Shown one piece after another: positions 4,280 through 54,223 of a stretch of DNA of 64,000 bases. The stretch is from positions 124,001-188,000 of IMG/VR virus record IMGVR_UViG_3300033233_000001. One strand, written 5' to 3'. Each line of letters begins with the position of its first letter. The stretch's first letter is position 1. The notes under the pieces were generated by a model. It saw nothing but the letters and a program-made list of their open reading frames with translations, was not told the DNA's origin and ran no database searches. The translations under genes were made by a program, and so were the position numbers.

Positions 4280-4774
4280 ATGCGCCCGCGAGAGCCAGAC
4301 GACGTATACACGTCACCGAGCGAAGCCGACCGCGCTCGCGCCTCGAAAGTTGCGATGAGGTGCTCCTACTGCAAGTCTCCGCTGCATCGCGCGCCCGACT
4401 GCCAAGCGCTGGCCGACGCCCCGATGATCGGCGGCCACGACATCATCGTCGACGGCAAGGTCTCCTCGAAGGCGCCGGATTTCGTGCGCCTGCGCTTGTT
4501 CGCCGTCTGGCCGCGCGGCGTGGTCATGCGCGCCGACGACAAGAAGGAAGACCTGCGTCCGCTCTCGGAGCCCGCTCCGTTCTGGCGCACGCGTCCGAAG
4601 TCCGAGCTTCTCGTCTGGCGATTGAAGCGGCTCGCCGCTGCCGACTACCCGTACCCCGGCATGCTGCACCTGTTCTTCGGACCGAAGCAGATCACGCTCG
4701 TGGCCGGTGACGACACGCTGGCGCTGGCGCGTGAGATTGCCGTCGCGCTGCGTACGGAAGGATTCGTCCGATGA
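4280..4774 (+). CDS. CCHC zinc-knuckle protein
   Basis: CSYCKSPLHRAPDC fits C-x2-C-x4-H-x4-C. Confidence 0.6.
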   Translation: MRPREPDDVYTSPSEADRARASKVAMRCSYCKSPLHRAPDCQALADAPMIGGHDIIVDGKVSSKAPDFVRLRLFAVWPRGVVMRADDKKEDLRPLSEPAPFWRTRPKSELLVWRLKRLAAADYPYPGMLHLFFGPKQITLVAGDDTLALAREIAVALRTEGFVR

Positions 4775-5112
4775 AGACGCGTCGTCGCATCCGACGCGAG
4801 CGCGTCGCGTTGAATCTCTTCGCGCGCTGGATGTCGGCCTTGGCCCCGAAGGAGACGCTGGACAACTCACCGTGGTTCCGCGAGCGCGCCGCTAAGAGCG
4901 CCGCTCAGCATCGCGCTGACGTAAGGGCGAGCCCGATGTACCTGCTGAGTGCTCATGCTTGGTGCGGACCGATCCCGGAGCCGTATTGCGCGCGTTGCGG
5001 CACATGGGTAGGGCGGTGGCCGAGGTTTGCCAGCGCTAAAGACGTCAAGAGCCGTCGCTCCTGCCACTTCTGTTCCGAACGGTGCATGCGAGGGCTCCCG
5101 TGCCGCGACTGA
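4771..5112 (+). CDS. Cys-rich hypothetical protein
   Basis: ATGA overlap with the previous ORF; CARCG and FCSERC motifs. Confidence 0.55.
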   Translation: MKTRRRIRRERVALNLFARWMSALAPKETLDNSPWFRERAAKSAAQHRADVRASPMYLLSAHAWCGPIPEPYCARCGTWVGRWPRFASAKDVKSRRSCHFCSERCMRGLPCRD

Positions 5113-5804
5113 TCTTCGTCTCGGACACGCACACGATGCACGGCCGTCTCACTCAAGCGATCATCGCTGCCAAGGCCGACATCCTCGTGCACTGCGGCGA
5201 CTTCACCGGCACCGGCAGGCTCACCGAAGTCGGCGATTTCGCAGACTGGTGCGCGGTGCTCTTGAAGAAGGGCTACGTAAAGCGCGTCGTTGCCATCGCC
5301 GGCAATCATGATCTTCTCTTTGACGAGACGCATCCGCGTACGCGTCGCGACTGGCCCACTGGACCAGAGATGTGCCGCAAGCGGCTGCGTGATGCCGGCG
5401 TCGTCTACCTCCGTGACTCGGCGACGATGATCGAGGGCTTGGTCTTTCACGGTATCCCCTGGACCGGCCGCTTTTACGACTGGGCCTTTCAGATCGACTC
5501 GCCCGAGCAGGACGAAGAGGTCTTCGGCGGACTGAGGCCCGGCATCGACGTGCTCATGACGCACGGGCCGCCGCATGGCATCCGAGACCTCGTGCCGCGC
5601 GGCGAGAACACGGGCTCTCCCGCGCTGCTGCGCGCACTCGACCGCGCGCGACCGCAGGTCAACGCCTTCGGCCACATCCATGAGGGCTACGGCATGACGC
5701 TCATGCCCAACGGCGCCCTGTGCATCAACGCCTCGACGTGCACAGGCGACTACAAGCCGACGAACCCGCCGATCGTTCTCGATCTGGAGCCTCGCGCGCG
5801 ATGA
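5100..5804 (+). CDS. calcineurin-like metallophosphoesterase
   Basis: SDTH, GDF, GNHD, THGPP and GHIHE motifs. Confidence 0.92.
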   Translation: MPRLIFVSDTHTMHGRLTQAIIAAKADILVHCGDFTGTGRLTEVGDFADWCAVLLKKGYVKRVVAIAGNHDLLFDETHPRTRRDWPTGPEMCRKRLRDAGVVYLRDSATMIEGLVFHGIPWTGRFYDWAFQIDSPEQDEEVFGGLRPGIDVLMTHGPPHGIRDLVPRGENTGSPALLRALDRARPQVNAFGHIHEGYGMTLMPNGALCINASTCTGDYKPTNPPIVLDLEPRAR

Positions 5805-6369
5805 GAGCGCGCGAGACGCTCGTGCCCGGCGGCTGGGTGCTCTACGAGCCTGGCTTCGTGCGCTCGTCCGGCGCGCTCATGGAGGCCCTGCTCGCCGTCC
5901 TGCCGCTGCGTGCAGAGACTCTGCGCGTTGCCGGCCGGGACGTGCTCACGCCGCGCTTGGTCAGCTGGCACGGGGATCCGGGCACCTCGTACGCGTACTC
6001 CGGAAGCCGCTTCGAGCCAGGGCCCTGGCCAGCCGTGCTCGACGTGCTGCGTGCGCAGCTGGCCGAGGTCGGCGTGTTCAACTCGATGCTAGCGACGGCC
6101 GCGACTCTATCGGCTTCCACGCTGACGACGAGCCCGAGCTAGGACCGGCTGCGCCCGGCGACGTACTGATCGCTTCGATCTCGCTGGGCGCGCGCCGCCG
6201 CTTCGTACTGAAGAATCGGACGGGCGAGAAGCGCGAGTACCCGTTGGGACTCGGAGACCTCCTCGTCATGGGCGGGACGACGCAGCGGCACTGGGTGCAC
6301 GGCGTACCGAAGACGTCGCTCGCGGTCGGTCCGCGACTGAACCTTACCTTCCGGCAGGTGCGAACGTGA
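5801..6369 (+). pseudogene. alkB: frameshifted AlkB-family 2OG-Fe(II) dioxygenase
   Basis: The N-half (TPRLVSWHGD..YAYSG..FNSML) and the C-half (DSIGFHADDEPELG..HGVPK..RLNLTFR) are in different frames; junction near 6093. Confidence 0.85.
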
Positions 6370-7000: not shown

Positions 7001-7192
7001 CGCGAGCGGCCCCGATGCTCTCAAAAGTACCGGACCCGCTCGCAACGACCGAAAAGACGAGGCAAAACAAGCAGATGTCGGATACTGGCTGGACGAACAC
7101 GGGCCTGCTGCTAGAGTCGACGAGAGACCAAAACGGACCCGCTCGCAAGACGGCACCGAATGCTGCGTAATGATTGGAGTTTTTCAGAGTCT
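7001..7192 (+). promoter_or_regulatory. CRISPR leader
   Basis: GCGAGCGG..CCGCTCGC inverted motif and a second GGACCCGCTCGCA ending 46 nt before the first repeat. Confidence 0.65.
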
Positions 7193-7376
7193 ATCGCAAT
7201 GGCTGCCCGGTGCCCTGAAACCGGTGACACGTCGGCGTCCTGCTCTGGTTTCAGCACGGCATGGCCGATCGCAATGGCTGCCCGGTGCCCTGAAACCGGT
7301 GACGAGGACAAGCCGACGCGCGCGTTCCAGCTCGGCCAAGATCGCAATGGCTGCCCGGTGCCCTGAAACCGGTGAC
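7193..7376 (+). CRISPR. orphan CRISPR mini-array (3 repeats, 2 spacers)
   Basis: Identical 36-nt repeats ATCGCAATGGCTGCCCGGTGCCCTGAAACCGGTGAC at 7193, 7268 and 7341; spacers of 39 and 37 nt. Confidence 0.9.
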
Positions 7377-20293: not shown

Positions 20294-20642
20294 CGGAGTC
20301 AGTCCCTCACGTCACGTCGAAGCAAAACCGGACCGCCCTCACGGAAGTCACCGCGGCAGACGCAACCGTATTCCGTAACGCCGAGGTACTCCATCTCGAC
20401 GAGCATGCACGTCCGCCGGCACTCGTCCTGACGCGCTCGCTCCGGCGCGGTGGCCAGCATGCGCCAGACGAAACAGCCGCCGACCGCGAGCAGCAAGATC
20501 GTGATCGACCAGAAGACGTTTGCAGTCAGCCCAGCCCAGTCAGAGCGCATGAGTCGGTCCTAGCACCTCCGGCAACGGCCGACAAGTGCTTACGACACAC
20601 TTTCGAGCGGATGCCGGAAGCGGCTGGCTTACTTGAAGGACT

Positions 20643-33862: not shown

Positions 33863-33919
33863 GTGTGTCGCAAGCGGCTTCCGATCGCGCTTGACTGTCC
33901 GACAGCCCGCACGTAACCT
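33863..33919 (+). promoter_or_regulatory. promoter with operator box upstream of the XRE regulator
   Basis: GTGTGTCGCAAGC, then TTGACT-17-TAACCT with TGTCCGACA in the spacer. Confidence 0.65.
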
Positions 33920-45625: not shown

Positions 45626-45670
45626 AATCTACGGCGTGTCGGACAGAATGTCAAGCGGCTTCCGACACAC
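45626..45670 (-). promoter_or_regulatory. promoter with operator boxes
   Basis: GTGTGTCGGAAGC, then TTGACA-17-TAGATT-8-GTG. Confidence 0.7.
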
Positions 45671-45724: not shown

Positions 45725-46028
45725 CCCGACGCACCTAACACTTCGATCTCGCATGTGTCGTACCAGCATGAGTCCGAGCGACCTGACCTGCTTGACCCTT
45801 CGATCTCGCCTGTCGAGGGGCGCTGGCGTGACGCGCGTCACGGCCCGACCTGCTTGACCCTTCGATCTCGCCTGTCGAGCAGCTGGCTAACACTGCGTGG
45901 CCATCCGATCAAAGACTACCCGACCTGCTTGACCCTTCGATCTCGCCTGTCGAGGCCTACGGCGACCTCGACGCCGGGGCCCGCGACCGTGTCCCGACCT
46001 GCTTGACCCTTCGATCTCGCCTGTCGAG
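45725..46028 (-). CRISPR. Cas12f-associated array (4 repeats plus a divergent terminal repeat)
   Basis: 36-nt repeat CTCGACAGGCGAGATCGAAGGGTCAAGCAGGTCGGG at 45993, 45919, 45844 and 45782; variant at 45725; spacers of 38, 39, 26 and 21 nt. Confidence 0.92.
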
Positions 46029-46090
46029 AGCCGTCGAAAAACACCAGCGATTCCGCGGGCCTCGTAGCCGGTCTGCGAGCGGTCCCTGTT

Positions 46091-46287
46091 CTCGACATGT
46101 GAGATCGAAGTGCCAAGCACGTTCGAGCGCTTCGTGGCCAACGCATCGAACTGGATTTCCGAACAAGTACCATTACTTGCTACGGTCCACGTACCTTCGC
46201 GAGCGGGTCCGGTACTTTTGCAAGCACCGGGGCCCCTCGCGTTCGTGCCCATCGGGGGGCACATCACCGAACTTGCGTTCGGAGAAA
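46091..46287 (-). ncRNA. tracrRNA, copy 1
   Basis: Inverted repeat copy (anti-repeat) at 46091-46126 plus hairpins; paralogous to 48632-48812. Confidence 0.8.
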
Positions 46288-47805
46288 TCATTCGGCCGCC
46301 TGCGCCTTCTCCGTGCGGGCCTTCTTTCGGATTCGACCGGACGCGCGCTTGATCGCTGCGATCTGATCCGGCAGCGGCAGCGGCTTACCGTCCCGCAGGA
46401 GCATGTTCCACGCGTAGATGACGTCGACGGGACGCTCTAGCCTGCACGTCACGACCTCACAGCAGAACTTGCCGCTCTTGCCGAAGGTCGCGCTGACCTC
46501 GGCCGAGTGCTCGTGCAGGCACGACGGACACGTCCGCGAGTTCATGTCGCTCGGCACGATCTCGACCGTCAGCCCCCGCTTCTTCGCCGCCCACTCGATG
46601 GACTCTCGCAGCTGCGCGAGCGGGAAGCTCCGCACGAGGTACTCGACGTGTTCGCCAAGCTCGGGAGCGCCATCCTTCGCTGGATTGCCCCAGTCTTCGA
46701 CGAGGATCCGCGACACGCCGCGCCTTTCGGCGAGGCGCATCGCGTGCGACGCGATCTCCTGGCACTTCGTGCGTACCCACCTGGCCTCCGCGTCTTCGAG
46801 TCGCGTGAAGTGCTCTTCGCGCCGAGCAGTGCCGTGACCCTTGGCACCGTCACCAAGCTCGCGCTTGTGCCGACCGAGTGACGAGCGCCGCGCACGGTAC
46901 GCCGCCTTGTGGGCGAGCACGTCGCCGCCGTCGGCGAGCACAGTCGTGTACGCTTCACGCCCGTCGTCGCCGCGGGCGATTGCCGCGGTCAGGAACGTCC
47001 GCACGCCTCGATGCAGAGCCATCGTGCGGCCGGTCTCGGTCTTACGGACCTCGGAAGTGAAAGACACGAAGGCCATCCACTTCCGTTTGCCATCGCGATC
47101 GTCGTCTTCGACCAGGCGGCAGTCGCCGAGGCAGGCCGGATCGGCCAGAACACGCTTCAGCGACGCGAAGCCGCTTCCGCCGTAGGGCTTCACGACCAAG
47201 CGCACCTGTGTCGGCCGGTCGCTGTCCTCGCCGAACAACGGCAGCGTCAAGATCGCCAGGCCGTCGCTCGGTTCGAGACGGATCGCGCCGTTGCCTGACG
47301 CGATGTAGATCGGAGAGCCACCCCTGAAGGTGGGAAGCGACATCTTGCCCTTCCATTTTTCCTTCCGCCACTTCTTCCAGCGCGTGAAGGCCGCACCGGC
47401 CGTACCAAGCAGGACTTTCGCGCCGGGGTACGTCGTCGCGACCTTCTCGTCGCCGTAGTACGGCTTGCCCTTCTTGACGCGTGCGGCCGCGGCCTCGCGT
47501 TCGTTGAGCCAGAGGTCACGCGTCAGCTGGTAACTCCGCGACCGCGCTAGGATCTTTCCGGCCTTCTTTGCGCCGAGCTTGCCGGCGCGCTCCTCGACTT
47601 CGAGATCGGTGATCACGCCGTTGAGGACGCGATGGATCGGAGCGCGCAGCGCGCGCAGGAGCGGCCCGAGTGCCGCCCAGTCGTGGTCGAGCGGGCGGAT
47701 CACCTCCAACCGCAGGGTCGAGACGATCTGCGCATCGACCGCCGCATCGTCTAACGCGGCCTCGACGACGAGCGGCCCCGTCTCTTCTTCAGCGGGCTCA
47801 GTCAC
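46288..47805 (-). CDS. cas12f: Cas12f1-like effector, predicted nuclease-dead (about 505 aa)
   Basis: Colinear with AsCas12f1 as recalled (LEVIRPLDHDW, GKMSLPTF, DGGD..GHG, ILVED, CPSC/CCEV Zn ribbon); RuvC-I reads MALHRG in place of MGIDLG. Confidence 0.85.
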   Translation of the reverse strand: MTEPAEEETGPLVVEAALDDAAVDAQIVSTLRLEVIRPLDHDWAALGPLLRALRAPIHRVLNGVITDLEVEERAGKLGAKKAGKILARSRSYQLTRDLWLNEREAAAARVKKGKPYYGDEKVATTYPGAKVLLGTAGAAFTRWKKWRKEKWKGKMSLPTFRGGSPIYIASGNGAIRLEPSDGLAILTLPLFGEDSDRPTQVRLVVKPYGGSGFASLKRVLADPACLGDCRLVEDDDRDGKRKWMAFVSFTSEVRKTETGRTMALHRGVRTFLTAAIARGDDGREAYTTVLADGGDVLAHKAAYRARRSSLGRHKRELGDGAKGHGTARREEHFTRLEDAEARWVRTKCQEIASHAMRLAERRGVSRILVEDWGNPAKDGAPELGEHVEYLVRSFPLAQLRESIEWAAKKRGLTVEIVPSDMNSRTCPSCLHEHSAEVSATFGKSGKFCCEVVTCRLERPVDVIYAWNMLLRDGKPLPLPDQIAAIKRASGRIRKKARTEKAQAAE

Positions 47806-48422
47806 GCTGCATCTCGACGTGACGTGCGCTTCTGTGCCTCGACGGCCGACGGGCTCGTCTCCGAGCCGGCGGCGCGCTTCGGCGTCTTCCGCAGCTGCCT
47901 GATCTCGGCACGCAGCGTGGCGTTCTCGACGCGCAGACGGTCGCACTCTTCCTTGGCCGCGACGAGTTCACTCGCGAGCGCCGTGTAACTCTTGTGACCC
48001 GCGCCCGCTCCGAGAATTCGAGAGCGCAGATCGCTCGCGAGACGACTCACGGTCTGAGCCGAGATCGGCGTCCCGTTCGTACGCTCCCACGTCCGCGCCT
48101 CGTCGAGCATCTCGCGCTGCTTGCCGGCGTCGCGGAAGCGACCGGCGGCCACAACCGCATGAATTCCCACGCCTTCGATGCCCTTCGCGCCCAGACCGTT
48201 ACGCGCTGCCCTGTACCCGTCGTATCGCGACGGGCGGCACAGGTTCGTCTGCTCCAGGAACTGGAGGAACGTGAGGCCCGTGTCCTTCCACAGGCCGGTC
48301 ACCTGTTCCGCCTCGTAGAGATACGAGAGGAAGTCGCCCTCTGCATCGTCCGCCAGCGTTCGGAGACGCTTGGCCTCGGCGATGAACTGTTCGAGCGTCG
48401 TCGACTTGTTGATTCGCGGCAT
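47802..48422 (-). CDS. 206-aa protein translationally coupled to cas12f
   Basis: GTGA overlap with the cas12f start; C-terminal coiled coil. Confidence 0.75.
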   Translation of the reverse strand: MPRINKSTTLEQFIAEAKRLRTLADDAEGDFLSYLYEAEQVTGLWKDTGLTFLQFLEQTNLCRPSRYDGYRAARNGLGAKGIEGVGIHAVVAAGRFRDAGKQREMLDEARTWERTNGTPISAQTVSRLASDLRSRILGAGAGHKSYTALASELVAAKEECDRLRVENATLRAEIRQLRKTPKRAAGSETSPSAVEAQKRTSRRDAA

Positions 48423-48429
48423 GTTCGTA

Positions 48430-48473
48430 GGTCTACACGGCCCAGGACCGTGAGTCAAGAGCTTGCGACACAC
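48430..48473 (-). promoter_or_regulatory. promoter of the partner-cas12f operon
   Basis: Box GTGTGTCGCAAGC, then TTGACT-17-TAGACC-7-ATG. Confidence 0.7.
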
Positions 48474-48506
48474 CTCGTTCCGTGAAGTCGCGAACGCTGG
48501 AACCTA

Positions 48507-48594
48507 CCGGCACGGTCGACCTCTCGATCTGGCGCTGCGAGGTCGCTCTTGCGGCTCGCCCGACGCGCTTGACCATCGATCTCGCCGTCGCGAG
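48507..48594 (-). CRISPR. second degenerate mini-array (2 variant repeats, 17-nt spacer)
   Basis: 48559-48594 resembles the main repeat; 48507-48541 pairs with the anti-repeat at 48632-48666. Confidence 0.7.
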
Positions 48595-48631
48595 TGAGGA
48601 TGGATCGCTCTGGACCGATTACCCCGTCACG

Positions 48632-48812
48632 CTCGCAGCTCCAGATCGAAGGGCCGAACGTGTCCGAGCGCTTCATGGCCAACGCATCGAACTGGATTTC
48701 CTCATGAGCACCAGCGCTCACGAGGTCCACGTACCTTCGCGAGTGCGGCCGAGACCACCTCGCGTTCGGGCCAATCGGGTGGCCCATATCGCCGAGCTTG
48801 CGCTCGGAGAAG
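48632..48812 (-). ncRNA. tracrRNA, copy 2
   Basis: Shares GAGCGCTTC.TGGCCAACGCATCGAACTGGATTTCC, GGTCCACGTACCTTCGCGAG and CTTGCG.TCGGAGAA with copy 1. Confidence 0.8.
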
Positions 48813-49059
48813 TTCTTGTCGGACGTCATCGGCCGTCCCAGCCCTCGCGACGAGCGCGCTCCAACAGGTCGACGCGCTCGGGTCCGACCGCTGCGTGCTG
48901 CCACATCTGGACGTGGGCCTCCTCGACGTCGACGAGACGCACGATCTCGGCGTCCTCGCCGGCAAGCTGGACGAAGCCGGCCTCCGGGCGCCAAATCCAG
49001 ATCGGCCCGCAGAGTACGTTGCCGGACTTTAGCTTGATGGTGGCGTCACGCATTGGGCA

Positions 49060-49131
49060 TTCGGGGGCCAGGACTCGAACCTGGACGGGCGACTTCAAGG
49101 GACGCTGGCCTGCCGATTAGCCGAACCCCGA
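49060..49131 (-). tRNA. tRNA-Gln(TTG), atypical loop
   Basis: Cloverleaf; loop CCTTGAA. Confidence 0.7.
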
Positions 49132-50274: not shown

Positions 50275-51999
50275 CTAGTCGCGGATGAAGTCGGCGATGA
50301 CGGCCGGCGCCGCTGCGTCGAAGCCTACCACGTCGATCATGCCGGCGTCGGTCGGATCTGCGATCGTGAACTCCGACGCGTCGGTCGCGACCACGATGAG
50401 CTTGGACGCGATGCCCATGTTCTCGCGGTACTGCTTGAGCGCCACGTGCGGATGCACGGCGCCGGCCCACGTCTCGTTGTCCGTCGCGACGTAGAACGCC
50501 TCGACCTTCTGCTTCTGCGCGAGCGCGTGGAGCATCGGCAGCGCGCAGTCGGTGCCGCCCATGGGAACGGCCTCCATGGCCTTGATGACGTCGGGCAGCG
50601 TCGTCTTCGCCGTGATGTTGACCGGGAGCAGACGCGAGGGCTGGCCGCCCCAGCGTCCGCCGTAGCCAGCCGCGTGACCGGCCGAGCCGCTCGCGAAGCC
50701 CACGATGTCGTAGTCCGACTCGCGCCGCGCCGTGACCATCGCCATGCAGCCGACGGCCTCGCGTGCCGTGAGCGTCGTGCCCGCGATGAAGCTCGACGCC
50801 ATCGAACCTGACACGTCGAGCGCGAGCATGATGGACTTGCCGGTGGGCTCGACAGTCTCGAACGCCAGGTAGAACGCGTCGTCGAGGGCGTCGATGATGG
50901 ACTGCACCGGCGACCACGTCAGCTTGCCCTTCTCGCCGTGGCCGGCTGCGTACGTCTTGAGCGCGAGGAGCACTGCGATCGGATGCAGCCGCGACTTCTT
51001 GATGGCGTCGGCGTTCTTCAGCTGCTTCACGACGAGCTTCGATGCGTCCGAGCCAGGAACGAGCAGGCCGTTCGCCGTCATGCGCCCGAGGTTGCGCACG
51101 CAAGCGTGCATCGGCATGCGCTGGAGCAGCGCATCCCATACAACCGCGTGCTTCTGGTGCTCTGACGGCACCATCTCGTGAGTGAGCCCGTACTCACGGA
51201 TGATCGTGGCCGCCTCGTTCGCGTCCTTCGCAGCGCGCACCTTCTCGACGCCCTCGATCAGCGCCGGCAGGGCTCCGGCGGCGACCGCCTCGTACGAGAC
51301 GCCCGCCTCCTGCTGCTTGCGCTTGACGGAGCGCTCCCCGAGGCCGTCGCGTCCCGCGATGGTCCAGCGCAGGATGGACGAGACGATCGGATCCGTCGTC
51401 TTCGGGTGCGCCTGCCGAAGCAGGTCGCGGTGCGAGCGTCCGCCGCGCTGCTGGTACTTCAGCAGCTGGTAGGCGAGGTCTCGCCCCTCCTTGCTCGTGT
51501 ACCACGCGCCGACCGCGCGGCGCAGGCCCGAGCCCCAGCCGCGAAGCTGCTCGACCTGAGCGACGAACTCGAAGAGGTGCGTGCCGGTCCGGCACACGCG
51601 TGGCAGCGCGGCAAGCGCGAGGCGCCGCACAACCGCGTCCTCGTGGGCAGCGGCGACGGCGAGCGCGAAGATCGCCGCATCGTTCTTCGGCGCGCGACCC
51701 GACTCGCTGAGCGCAGCGATGTGCTCGACAGCGGCCGCAGCGTCGTCCTTGAGGCAGCGGCCGAGCGCGGTCGCGTTCTCCTTGACGAGCTTCTTCTCGC
51801 CGACGTGGAACGTCCCGCCCTCGGCGCCGAGGATCAGAAAACGGTCCAGCCGCTTCCAGTCGTCCACTTCAAACGTGAAGCCACCGGCCGCGTTCTTGAC
51901 CTGACGCACGTCGGCCTTCGCCGACTGCGGCGCGTCCTCGCGCGCAGCGGACACGGACTTCTTCTTCGACGCACCGAGGTGCGCGGCGTAGTTGGACAT
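50275..51999 (-). CDS. rsr: Ro60/Rsr TROVE-vWA RNA-binding protein
   Basis: NAAGGF..RFLILG, KYQQRGG..HRD, DVSGSM, GGTDCALPM, TDNETW and GFD. Confidence 0.95.
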   Translation of the reverse strand: MSNYAAHLGASKKKSVSAAREDAPQSAKADVRQVKNAAGGFTFEVDDWKRLDRFLILGAEGGTFHVGEKKLVKENATALGRCLKDDAAAAVEHIAALSESGRAPKNDAAIFALAVAAAHEDAVVRRLALAALPRVCRTGTHLFEFVAQVEQLRGWGSGLRRAVGAWYTSKEGRDLAYQLLKYQQRGGRSHRDLLRQAHPKTTDPIVSSILRWTIAGRDGLGERSVKRKQQEAGVSYEAVAAGALPALIEGVEKVRAAKDANEAATIIREYGLTHEMVPSEHQKHAVVWDALLQRMPMHACVRNLGRMTANGLLVPGSDASKLVVKQLKNADAIKKSRLHPIAVLLALKTYAAGHGEKGKLTWSPVQSIIDALDDAFYLAFETVEPTGKSIMLALDVSGSMASSFIAGTTLTAREAVGCMAMVTARRESDYDIVGFASGSAGHAAGYGGRWGGQPSRLLPVNITAKTTLPDVIKAMEAVPMGGTDCALPMLHALAQKQKVEAFYVATDNETWAGAVHPHVALKQYRENMGIASKLIVVATDASEFTIADPTDAGMIDVVGFDAAAPAVIADFIRD

Positions 52000-52037
52000 G
52001 ACGAATCTCCCAGAGACAAGAGCCCAGAGAATCAGAG

Positions 52038-52112
52038 CGTCCCATGGGGGACTCGAACCCCCGTTGCCGACGTGAGAGGCCGGCGTCCTTTGGCCATCTA
52101 GACGAATGGGAC
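52038..52112 (-). tRNA. tRNA-Glu(CTC)
   Basis: Cloverleaf. Confidence 0.88.
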
Positions 52113-52409
52113 AGGGAACTGTACAGGAACCGAAGACGAGATCAGGCCGCGACTTCTTCACCCGCGCGCGCCGGGGGCTTCGCTTCGACCTTCGGCGCGC
52201 ACTCCTTGCACACGAGCTTTTCCTTGGCGACCTCGTGTCCGAACCGCGTGTTCATCGGCCGGTCGAGGTGGTCGCGCTCGTACATGGCCACGCGGTACGA
52301 CGAGACGACGCGGACTGGGCGCGGGTCGAGCACGGTGCCGTTACGCATCGAGCCGTCGAACGCGATCCGGCAGACCTCACAGCGATAGCTCATCGGAATC
52401 ACCTTTTTC

Positions 52410-52932: not shown

Positions 52933-54223
52933 AAAATGTGATCGAACGTGTTCGTTCGGTCACGACTTGGCTCCTGCTTCCGCCACGACACTTGCTCGAC
53001 GCTGAGGCCGTCGAGTAGAGGCAGCCGTGTCCACAGGCGTAGCCTTGCGGCTGTTCCCCGAAAGCCTCGGGTACGCTTCCAAATTCAACGCGGCGTTGCG
53101 GTCTCGGTCCAGGACCAGACCGCATGCCTCGCACTCGTACGTCCTCGTGCCCAGCGACAACTCGGCCTTCACGACTCCGCAGCCGCTGCACGTCTTACTC
53201 GACGGGAACCACCGGTCAGCCACGATCACCTCGCAGCCGTAGACAGGTCCCTTCTGTATCAGCAGCGTCCTGAACATCCCCATCCCGACATCCGAGAGCG
53301 CACGCGCCAGCGAATGGTTTCTGAGCATCCCTGCCACGTTCATGCCCTCGATGACCGCCGCTTGGGTTTCACGCGCGATCTTCGTGGTCGTCTTGTGCAG
53401 GAAATCCTTCCGGATGTTCGCGACGTCTCGGTGAATCTTCGCCAGTTCCTCACGAGCCTTACGCCTGTTCGCGCTTCCCTCCTGTCTACGATGGAGCTTC
53501 CTGTTCGCACGCCGCAGCTTCTTCAACGCCTTCCGAAGCGGCTTCGGCGCGTCTAGGGGCTCTCCTCGTGACGGCACGACCGCAGTCTTGAGGCCCAGGT
53601 CGATGCCGAGGATCTCGTGCTCCGGGACGTTCGGCACCCGGAAGTCGCCCTCGACCTGAACCGACAGATACCAACGGTCGGCGATGCGCTTCACGCGACC
53701 GCCGAGGATCTTGCCGTGCAGCCTGAGCGGCTCGCGCGTCTTCACGCTGCCGATGACCGGGAGGTGAACGTGCTTGCCATCGGCAAGGAAATGGAATTTG
53801 TCGTTCGCGACGTAGAAGGCGTCACGGGTCTTGCCCTTCTTCTTGAAGTTCGGTGGTCCGACGCGTGGGCCCTGGCGCTTTCCCGTGATGCTCTTGATGT
53901 AGTTCGAGAACGCCGTGTCCAGGTCGGAGAACGCGCCGGCATTCGCGTCTCGCGGCGACTCGAAGATCCAGGGGAACGCTTCGCCCTTGATGGCGTTGAA
54001 CTGCTTCTTGAGCTTGGTCCCGCTGGGCTTCTGGCCGGCCCTGTACTGGCGGTTCCACTCGTGAAGTGCCCAGTTGTACGTGAAGCGCGCGACACCGCAT
54101 GCACGCAGCATCGCCTGGCGCTGCCGTACTGTCGGGTCGAGAGCTATGACGTGTCCGTGGATCATGTGATCGTGCGTCTGTAGTTTGTCCGTAAATGTCC
54201 GCGAAGACAAGAGCTAGCTATGG
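52924..54223 (-). mobile_element. non-autonomous IS607-like TnpB element
   Basis: Removing it rejoins GGAG|GGTGAACC, the tRNA 5' end; CGATCACAT occurs near both ends; no tnpA. Confidence 0.65.
52960..54165 (-). CDS. tnpB: TnpB RNA-guided endonuclease (intact D-E-D)
   Basis: N-terminal HTH, GIDLGLK, IEGM, CSGC/CEAC and DRDRNAALNL. Confidence 0.93.
   Translation of the reverse strand: MIHGHVIALDPTVRQRQAMLRACGVARFTYNWALHEWNRQYRAGQKPSGTKLKKQFNAIKGEAFPWIFESPRDANAGAFSDLDTAFSNYIKSITGKRQGPRVGPPNFKKKGKTRDAFYVANDKFHFLADGKHVHLPVIGSVKTREPLRLHGKILGGRVKRIADRWYLSVQVEGDFRVPNVPEHEILGIDLGLKTAVVPSRGEPLDAPKPLRKALKKLRRANRKLHRRQEGSANRRKAREELAKIHRDVANIRKDFLHKTTTKIARETQAAVIEGMNVAGMLRNHSLARALSDVGMGMFRTLLIQKGPVYGCEVIVADRWFPSSKTCSGCGVVKAELSLGTRTYECEACGLVLDRDRNAALNLEAYPRLSGNSRKATPVDTAASTRRPQRRASVVAEAGAKS

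Follow-up and report, generated by a model that had tools for sequence, protein, structure and literature searches.

The locus described here raises the question of why one phage CRISPR (clustered and regularly interspaced short palindromic repeats) effector should have two guide-RNA cassettes next to it. It lies in a stretch of 64,000 nucleotides (nt) with a G+C content of 65%, taken from the 297.7-kb phage IMGVR_UViG_3300033233_000001; the whole stretch is called the window below, and all coordinates are positions in it. On the minus strand the order is a tRNA-Gln gene, an open reading frame (ORF) of 75 amino acids (aa), the cassette in question (48480-48812, cassette 2), the gene of a 206-aa partner protein, the gene of a 505-aa Cas12f-like effector, a first trans-activating CRISPR RNA (tracrRNA; copy 1) and the main CRISPR array. 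Only one effector gene of this Cas12f-like family is encoded in the window. The region 48480-48812 is probably a functional second guide-RNA cassette of a phage type V-F-like CRISPR system, served by a Cas12f-derived effector that has lost the first RuvC aspartate.

Two tracrRNA genes and a private repeat

An earlier note on this DNA had described 48632-48812 as a diverged copy of 46091-46287, and both the relationship and the coordinates were accurate. Read on the minus strand, copy 2 (48812 to 48632) matched copy 1 (46287 to 46091) by BLAST with E = 3e-27 and 72.7% identity over 187 nt, and alignment with MAFFT gave 77% column identity with gaps of 2, 17 and 1 nt, long identical blocks being interleaved with diverged segments. 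The diverged segments are the helices, in which pairing is retained, and the single-stranded, protein-contact-like blocks are almost identical in the two copies. Folded singly, both copies form a 5′ GNRA hairpin (P0) followed by P1, P2, P3, P4 and a 3′ tail in the same order, with fold energies of -90.9 kcal/mol for copy 1 (z = -5.3) and -85.0 kcal/mol for copy 2 (z = -3.2) relative to dinucleotide shuffles; the shared structure on which the note's proposal depended was thus borne out. Copy 1 (46091-46287, minus strand, 197 nt) begins at the effector stop codon and runs through P0, P1, P2, P3 and P4 into its anti-repeat (about 46135-46091). In copy 2, delimited by BLAST, alignment, covariance model and predicted fold, the approximate positions on the same strand are 48810-48789 for P0, 48785-48768 for P1, 48764-48738 for P2, 48729-48693 for P3, 48692-48662 for P4 and about 48666-48632 for the anti-repeat.

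The hairpins quoted earlier as changed in sequence but not in pairing were correctly read: GTGCCC/GGGCAC in one copy faces GGGCCA/TGGCCC in the other, and CAAGTA/TACTTG faces a 10-bp GTGAGC.../...GCTCAT stem, P3 having been remade as a stem of that length. Absent from that list was a pair in P0, where CCGAAC-GCAA-GTTCGG in copy 1 is CCGAGC-GCAA-GCTCGG in copy 2, an A-U to G-C replacement. Two pairs of P1 are altered on both strands, and P4 shows one U-A to U-G change. P2 is closed by GCGAG/CUCGC around an inner hairpin, and its insert is 17 nt longer in copy 1. Cassette 2 RNA is a tracrRNA paralogue of about 180 nt that shares five helices and the conserved single-stranded blocks with copy 1.

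Fourteen related loci, denoted here by L numbers, were gathered, and the same RNA was found behind the effector in every locus with sequence there. An alignment of 20 scaffolds of the family, from which the RNAalifold structure and the covariance model were derived, showed compensatory change at 15 of 22 pairs. In the model-derived alignment 98.3% of cells were paired and 60 were altered on both sides; none of 500 shuffles did as well, and sliding the partners lowered pairing to 22-50%. This alignment is fitted to the model and so leans toward it, and the MAFFT-based outcome was identical. Selection on the scaffold, as proposed in the earlier note, is in agreement with the compensatory change seen both between the copies and across 19 family members. 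Searched with the covariance model, a check that the same note had suggested, the window returned exactly two matches, copy 1 with 140 bits and copy 2 with 118 bits (E 5e-24, full model), and sister phages yielded second scaffolds. A weak match in Virus Rctr197k (105650-105758) was judged spurious, being inside coding sequence and covering only P1 and P2. An Rfam scan of the window gave nothing but tRNAs above threshold.

That the homologous blocks are coding sequence is hardly credible, although an ORF does run through each. The minus-strand ORF of 124 aa from 48829 to 48455 has an ATG that overlaps the stop of the preceding ORF, a paralogous ORF starts with copy 1 (46291 to 45887), and the ATGA start/stop overlap thus stands beside the start of both copies. 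Gene callers put ORFs on the equivalent stretch of L007 and L017, and the conceptual peptides are partly alike, for instance in EIQFDALA(T/M)KRS. With respect to the homologous block, however, the two ORFs do not start in the same frame, and gaps of 2, 17 and 1 nt break the frame within it; codon positions 1/2/3 carry 14/15/10 of the substitutions, the copy 1 ORF crosses the CRISPR repeats in changing frames, and the helix variation of the family is compensatory. The coding reading was rejected for both copies on the frame-shifting gaps, the substitution pattern and the passage of an ORF through repeats.

Behind anti-repeat 2 follows a gap of 37 nt (48595-48631, minus strand) without the GGACCGCTCGCA leader motif known from cassette 1. 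In all downstream cassettes (window 46068-46080, minus strand, and those of L002, L003, L007, L009, L011, L012, L016 and L017) the 3′ strand of P2 is repeated as (A)CCGCTCGCA(A) between the anti-repeat and the first repeat, from where an alternative pairing with the 5′ strand of P2 would be possible; in the window, cassette 2 has no such element. The mini-array is built as first described: a diverged main-type repeat of 36 nt (RA, 48594 to 48559), a 17-nt spacer CGAGCCGCAAGAGCGAC (48558 to 48542) and a variant repeat of 35 nt (RB, 48541 to 48507), all on the minus strand.

The predicted duplex energies separate the two repeats. The main repeat pairs with anti-repeat 1 at -49.4 kcal/mol (32 bp; shuffled -21.7) and with anti-repeat 2 at -42.1 kcal/mol (shuffled mean -24.7), and RA at -44.0 and -36.8 kcal/mol, respectively. 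RB, on the other hand, pairs with anti-repeat 2 at -55.9 kcal/mol over 31 bp, as against -24.4 kcal/mol with anti-repeat 1, which is the shuffled level (-21.0 +/- 3.3). The pairing of the variant repeat with its own anti-repeat, noted before, was therefore confirmed, but the mini-array belongs to copy 2 in part only: since RA pairs better with copy 1, RB alone is private. Comparison of the copy 1:main-repeat duplex with the copy 2:RB duplex showed that 19 of the 26 shared pairs are unaltered, one is a wobble and six have changed on both sides in a compensatory manner. Anti-repeat 2 has co-evolved with one private repeat, RB, and tracrRNA2:RB is thereby orthogonal to tracrRNA1. This preservation of pairing between two separate genes through change is the strongest single argument that copy 2 is in use. 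In these duplexes the anti-repeat pairs by its 3′ end with the 5′ end of the repeat, with the guide following on the 3′ side of the repeat, which is the topology of Cas12f guides as known from the single-guide RNA (sgRNA). By this topology the guides of cassette 2 would be the 17-nt spacer behind RA and UAGGUUCCAGCGUUCGCGAC behind RB.

TracrRNA2 is predicted still to pair with main-type repeats, at the energy given above for the main repeat, and it could on that account be a decoy or buffer RNA that binds the effector or main-type CRISPR RNAs (crRNAs) without a useful target, titrating the complex or competing with tracrRNA1. RNAs that mimic CRISPR repeats and inhibit Cas proteins have been described from phages (PMC11656645). 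A decoy would need neither a private co-evolved repeat nor the conserved guide-like segment that stands behind the scaffold, and this role seems very unlikely to us.

The effector and its partner protein

The effector gene (46288-47805, minus strand, GTG start) encodes a member of the Cas12f lineage. A search of its profile against PDB sequences gave AsCas12f chains first (E 4e-38, in two stretches spanning residues 4-436). The Pfam model Cas12f1-like_TNB scored 25.9 bits, just below its cut-off of 26.3, the zinc-ribbon TNB domain being retained, and the NCBIfam models of Cas12f2 and TnpB matched weakly, far below their cut-offs. In RuvC-I the IDLG of AsCas12f aligns to HRGV (motif ALHRGV), an Asp to Arg replacement, and H-R-G is invariant in 22 aligned members; the Glu of RuvC-II (EDW) and the Asp of RuvC-III are kept. 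From these motifs the effector is predicted to be unable to cut DNA. Within the close clade its ratio of nonsynonymous to synonymous substitution rates (dN/dS) is 0.19-0.29 at dS 0.6-1.0, a degree of purifying selection which shows that the protein is maintained. Together with at least 39 metagenomic homologues this is in line with the earlier proposal that the dead protein is probably functional. Virus Rctr197k and an IMG/VR phage of 392 kb have further relatives; in GTDB, searched at one genome per species, the family was not found, and all its finds were in phage-like contigs. The only deposited relative, Virus Rctr197k (KX853510.1), has a second CRISPR array of 1.5 kb with different repeats (110803-114219), adjoining a feature of about 620 codons annotated as 'similar to transposase' and 7 kb from its dead Cas12f (dCas12f) locus. 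For the Rctr197k array no self-targets were present in the 50 kb of its genome examined.

The partner gene (47802-48422, minus strand) ends in a stop codon that overlaps the effector start (GTGA). A partner of about 200 aa always stands directly upstream of the effector and is translationally coupled to it in the related loci, and it was found with this effector family only. Its dN/dS in the close clade is 0.33-0.71. The predicted model shows an all-helical N-terminal domain and a C-terminal leucine-zipper coiled coil (predicted local distance difference test, pLDDT, 83). Pfam gave only weak coiled-coil matches, and NCBIfam, PHROGs and ESM Atlas nothing significant; Foldseek against PDB and BFVD returned no match at E <= 0.001, and by Pfam and Foldseek there was no extracytoplasmic function (ECF) sigma factor, helix-turn-helix (HTH) or other recognisable fold. 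Feature matches in ESM Atlas to DUF3102-like clusters are unverified leads. L015 carries tandem paralogous partner genes (4545-5162 and 5387-6004), each preceded by its own scaffold copy and promoter motif.

Neither cas1, cas2 nor cas4 was found among the flanking window ORFs scanned or in the gene tables of the related loci, and the flanking ORFs that were scanned matched VWA, Ro60, TnpB and metallophosphatase families only. An adaptation module occurs in many type V-F loci, but not in all. Genes of the Tn7-like tnsB/tnsC/tniQ set were likewise absent among the neighbours in the window and in the related loci.

The second cassette in sister phages and its candidate guide

Each of the five other close relatives with enough upstream sequence (L007, L008, L013, L014 and L015, the last with two), the effectors of which are 68-77% identical, has a second scaffold; in the more distant L002, L003, L011, L012, L016 and L017 none was seen inside the flanks examined. 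In L013, L014 and L015 it begins a few nt behind tRNA-Gln, the same site as in the window, and in L007 and L008 it is about 4 kb away, ahead of other genes. These upstream scaffolds form a clade of their own, lack P0 and the anti-repeat and are single-guide-like. Copy 2 sits in the scaffold tree with copy 1 among the downstream-type scaffolds, so that in this phage a duplicated dual-RNA cassette stands where the sister phages have the single-guide-like one. The independent maintenance proposed in the earlier note is to be qualified accordingly: judged from the tree, it is the presence of a second cassette at this position that is maintained, and not copy 2 as such.

Behind the single-guide-like scaffolds (L013 5240-5300, L014 2690-2745, L015 4340-4490 and L008 520-620) stand two to six short units of 12-20 nt each, frequently starting with AAAATCC and closed by the repeat's final 4-7 nt, (GT)CGG(G/T); the appearance is that of arrays in which no more than a 3′ tag is left of each repeat. 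The downstream array of L014 has spacers of 17-18 nt, so that short guides appear natural in this clade.

The spacer position behind RB is occupied by the putative fixed guide TAGGTTCCAGCGTTCGCGAC (48487-48506, minus strand). The first 11-17 nt of the post-RB segment are conserved behind the upstream scaffolds of L013, L014 and L015: AGGTTCCAGCG stands directly behind the last repeat-like tag in the window and in these three loci, and window and L015 are equal at 17 of 17 nt. In L007, where no scaffold adjoins, the same promoter lacks AGGTTCCAGCG, which ties the element to the RNA cassette. A promoter element is disfavoured as its nature, given the L007 promoter without it and a varying distance to the promoter. 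In its behaviour the segment resembles a fixed guide, the 5′ part of which, on the seed side, is conserved.

The promoter-like site of the partner-effector operon, read by eye at 48430-48473 on the minus strand, consists of the motif GTGTGTCGCAAGC, TTGACT (48458-48453), a spacing of 17 nt and TAGACC (48435-48430); the consensus scan did not call it, and with this placement transcription would start at the partner ATG (48422) or beside it. The motif that precedes the boxes, GTGTGTCGNAAGC, occurs 11 times in the window as against 0.56 expected. Written as GTGTGTCG(N)AAGC, its 11 sites are mainly intergenic, for example 48461-48473 (minus), 45658-45670 (minus), 33863-33875 (plus) and 20588-20600 (minus), and are often directly upstream of TTGAC, where they pair with an GTCCGACAC in inverted orientation lying between the -35 box and the -10 box. 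It looks like a phage promoter or operator class common to the sister phages.

Placed 65-84 bp upstream of the predicted operon start, the guide DNA could be its own target. The effector with tracrRNA2:RB would then bind the DNA that encodes the guide and either block read-through from the tRNA cluster or tune the operon promoter, a type V counterpart to the repression that Cas9 exerts on its own promoter with the long tracrRNA. The post-RB guide is identical by construction to its encoding DNA, it is conserved where its flanks are not, and in the window, as in L013, L014 and L015, the operon promoter follows directly on the cassette; no other guide match exists in the 64-kb window, nor on the 298-kb contig by exact 17-mer scan. 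Systems of dCas12f with a sigma-E factor (dCas12f-sigmaE) often target their own upstream region (PMC13472631), and a natural single guide making Cas9 self-regulate is cited in the same paper. Arrays, however, normally avoid self-targeting since the repeat end is no protospacer-adjacent motif (PAM), the site is upstream of the -35 box where RNA polymerase would not be occluded, the distance to the promoter motif varies (21, 11 and 13 nt), and in L007 and L008 the second scaffold is far from this operon, at the distance given above. Autoregulation is a live alternative, though rather unlikely in our assessment.

A functional second cassette is the preferred reading, and it may work as follows. 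Cassette 2 would be transcribed by read-through from the upstream unit of tRNA genes and small ORF, tracrRNA2 would pair with RB, and the same effector would load the tracrRNA2:RB duplex. The guide delivered would be the 16-20 nt behind RB (UAGGUUCCAGCG...). It may be hard-wired: in the sister phages a single-guide-like scaffold at the corresponding position of the genome would deliver this same sequence, and the downstream main array would be the source of variable guides. The complex, probably with the coiled-coil partner, would bind DNA without cleavage and so control transcription of a conserved target. RA and the 17-nt spacer may form another short guide for which tracrRNA1 is the main partner, or they may be left over from the duplication.

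Several observations weigh against this reading. The predicted loss of nuclease activity depends on a single residue, both other acidic residues being retained, and the consensus promoter scan found no promoter for cassette 2. No guide had a target in the window with mismatches allowed, and both arrays were without target among 50,697 isolated phage records; the 17-nt spacer, spacer 2 and the post-RB guide had none as exact words in IMG/VR, and spacer 2 was without one in the genomes of GTDB, all these searches ending negative or at chance level. Outside the phage only one hit was obtained, for the post-RB guide, which agrees at 19/20 positions with the replication-gene region of Pseudomonas phi297-like phages; as one independent match it was set aside and not used, because several chance matches are expected for a 17-mer. 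With RA preferring copy 1 the mini-array is not cleanly private, and it is unexplained how the odd short units behind the sister-phage scaffolds would be loaded. In the scaffold tree the branch of copy 2 is longer than that of copy 1 (0.30 vs 0.13), which together with the shortened P2 could indicate relaxed constraint.

The last points would also be met by a decaying duplicate, in which scaffold, leader and first repeats of cassette 1 were copied upstream and are drifting, the structure being a sign of recent ancestry. Copy 2 groups with copy 1 on that longer branch, its P2 is 17 nt shorter, the family leader motif is lost, the mini-array has just two repeats, and neither target nor promoter was found. 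Against decay, about 23-27% of positions differ and yet every helix is kept, with compensatory pairs in P0 (one), P1 (two) and P3; the protein-contact-like single-stranded blocks are almost unchanged; every close relative examined keeps a second scaffold; and six of the seven changes at paired anti-repeat:RB positions are compensatory, which drift does not yield. Decay is quite unlikely on this evidence.

A wider version of the functional reading is plausible but falls short of being probable. It would make the locus a two-channel guide system in which one nuclease-deficient effector is served by two diverged tracrRNA genes: RB would be read by tracrRNA2 alone, and a hard-wired, phage-conserved guide would be made via the tRNA-cluster transcript independently of the array guides. 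Dual-RNA and single-guide forms would swap at one site, which would be a still existing intermediate stage with CRISPR arrays on one side and omega-RNA-like single guides on the other. If true, the natural orthogonal tracrRNA:repeat pair would show how guide channels become insulated within one cell, and would offer a ready design by which a miniature DNA binder could be given several guides under separate control. The huge-phage Cas12f that lacks one catalytic residue would then be a maintained RNA-guided DNA-binding device with an obligatory new partner, in keeping with the exaptation of TnpB and Cas12f relatives as regulators of transcription, in this case by a virus. Its conserved, hard-wired guide would be a handle for finding what such phages control.

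Surroundings of the locus and comparison with known systems

Of the 33 tRNA genes in the window, 32 are on the minus strand, mostly at 49-64 kb (ARAGORN), and tRNA-Gln(ttg) at 49060-49131 is the final gene of this long minus-strand cluster. Between it and copy 2 lies the 75-aa ORF (48826-49053, minus strand), the stop codon of which comes immediately before cassette 2. It had no match in Pfam, NCBIfam or PHROG, and a homologue with 60% identity stands at L014 5614-5829, downstream of the L014 array. The final 12 nt ahead of its stop resemble the effector-gene 3′ end that precedes copy 1, which hints that the duplication creating cassette 2 carried flanking sequence along. On the other side, copy 1 is followed on the minus strand by the main-array leader (46029-46090), with the family-wide motif GGGACCGCTCGCA and a T-run, and by the main array (45725-46028), which has four 36-nt repeats at 45993, 45919, 45844 and 45782, spacers of 38, 39, 26 and 21 nt, and a diverged terminal repeat (45725-45760) that still pairs with anti-repeat 1 at -48.1 kcal/mol. 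Beyond the array a strong sigma-70-like promoter (TTGACA, 17 nt, TAGATT; 45626-45654, minus strand) has the GTGTGTCGGAAGC motif just ahead.

A second, unrelated CRISPR-like array at 7192-7376 on the plus strand has three 37-nt repeats (GATCGCAATGGCTGCCCGGTGCCCTGAAACCGGTGAC) and spacers of about 37 nt, with no ORF above 365 aa within about 4 kb. Its leader (7001-7191) resembles that of the dCas12f array (GGACCCGCTCGCAA ... GTTTTTC, then the first repeat), and it contains a hairpin (7001-7043) that shares 90% identity with the P2 insert of copy 1. A link of either tracrRNA to this array was rejected, the duplex energies being equal to those of shuffled controls. Inside the tRNA region a canonical IS605-type TnpB of 416 aa (52960-54210, minus strand) has HTH_OrfB, OrfB_IS605 and TNB domains and intact RuvC motifs (GIDLG, E, DRDRNAA); a link of copy 2 to this TnpB was also rejected, since the proteins are unrelated (BLASTP E 0.44) and the contact blocks of copy 1 are kept. 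A phage Ro60 orthologue (50275-52161, minus strand; TROVE and Ro60 vWA domains, E 4e-57) is flanked by tRNA-Glu genes and is syntenic in L007, L013 and L015, with release-factor-like genes nearby in sister phages.

Sequence analysis, as far as it can reach, supports the interpretation of the locus as a dCas12f-type system of a phage in which two guide cassettes are partly orthogonal, and no description of a type V locus with two tracrRNA genes, of a tracrRNA co-evolved with a private repeat, or of the partner protein was found in text searches of one open-access library. What came nearest were a remark on a possible second tracrRNA in certain Cas9 loci and the sharing of a single tracrRNA by atypical crRNAs (the latter in PMC11656645). 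Type V-F Cas12f, represented by AsCas12f, is close in being the best match among solved structures, in its size class of about 500 aa and its zinc-ribbon TNB, in the tracrRNA adjoining the effector gene with the array next to it, and in a guide that lies 3′ of the repeat. The present family differs in the RuvC-I Asp, which is Arg in all members and leaves the triad incomplete, in the lack of adaptation genes among the flanking ORFs scanned, in irregular spacers of 17-39 nt, in an obligatory coiled-coil partner, in two scaffold genes of which one has a private repeat, and in its occurrence in phage-like contigs only, with none in the GTDB genomes searched.

Among nuclease-deficient relatives, dCas12f-sigmaE and CRISPR-associated dCas12f (PMC13472631) also combine a Cas12f-derived binder without a complete RuvC site with an operonic protein partner. 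In these systems short guides suffice, some loci aim guides at their own upstream region, and single-guide-like and array-like guide genes both exist (PMC13472631). Their proteins, however, are C-terminally truncated and only weakly similar to the effector here (9n9c, E 8e-6), their partner is an ECF sigma factor whereas the present one has no sigma match, their hosts are Bacteroidota chromosomes and not a high-GC huge phage, and no dual tracrRNA with a private repeat is described there (PMC13472631). A huge-phage 'dCas14' without one catalytic residue was suggested in a remark by Al-Shayeb et al. 2020 to be a host-gene repressor and not a cutter of DNA (PMC7162821). With its Cas14/Cas12f-type effector, an array and no adaptation genes it is alike by description, the same family being unconfirmed, and no second tracrRNA, private repeat or partner is described for it (PMC7162821).

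Extra guides beside an array are known from type V-K, in which Cas12k uses a separate guide outside the array with a diverged repeat and a short spacer to a fixed conserved site (PMC11656645). This CRISPR-associated transposon (CAST) system is alike in pairing a pseudonuclease type V effector with an additional guide, but its atypical crRNA shares the single tracrRNA, whereas here the extra guide has a tracrRNA gene of its own and no transposition genes are present among the neighbours examined. With the long-form tracrRNA of Cas9 and the small CRISPR/Cas-associated RNA (scaRNA) of Francisella, an extra scaffold-type RNA sends the same effector to a fixed regulatory target without cleavage; these are type II systems, and the extra RNA is an isoform or partner of a single tracrRNA and not the product of a duplicated tracrRNA gene that has a co-evolved repeat. 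TldR (TnpB-like nuclease-dead repressor) of prophages, finally, is a phage-borne nuclease-dead TnpB/Cas12 relative with a scaffold and short-guide RNA at the 3′ end of its gene and a conserved target that is repressed, and the single-guide-like upstream scaffolds of the sister phages resemble it. It belongs to another TnpB branch, its targets are host flagellin or opp genes, and it has one guide per gene without a CRISPR array or a tracrRNA:repeat duplex, both of which are present in the locus described here.

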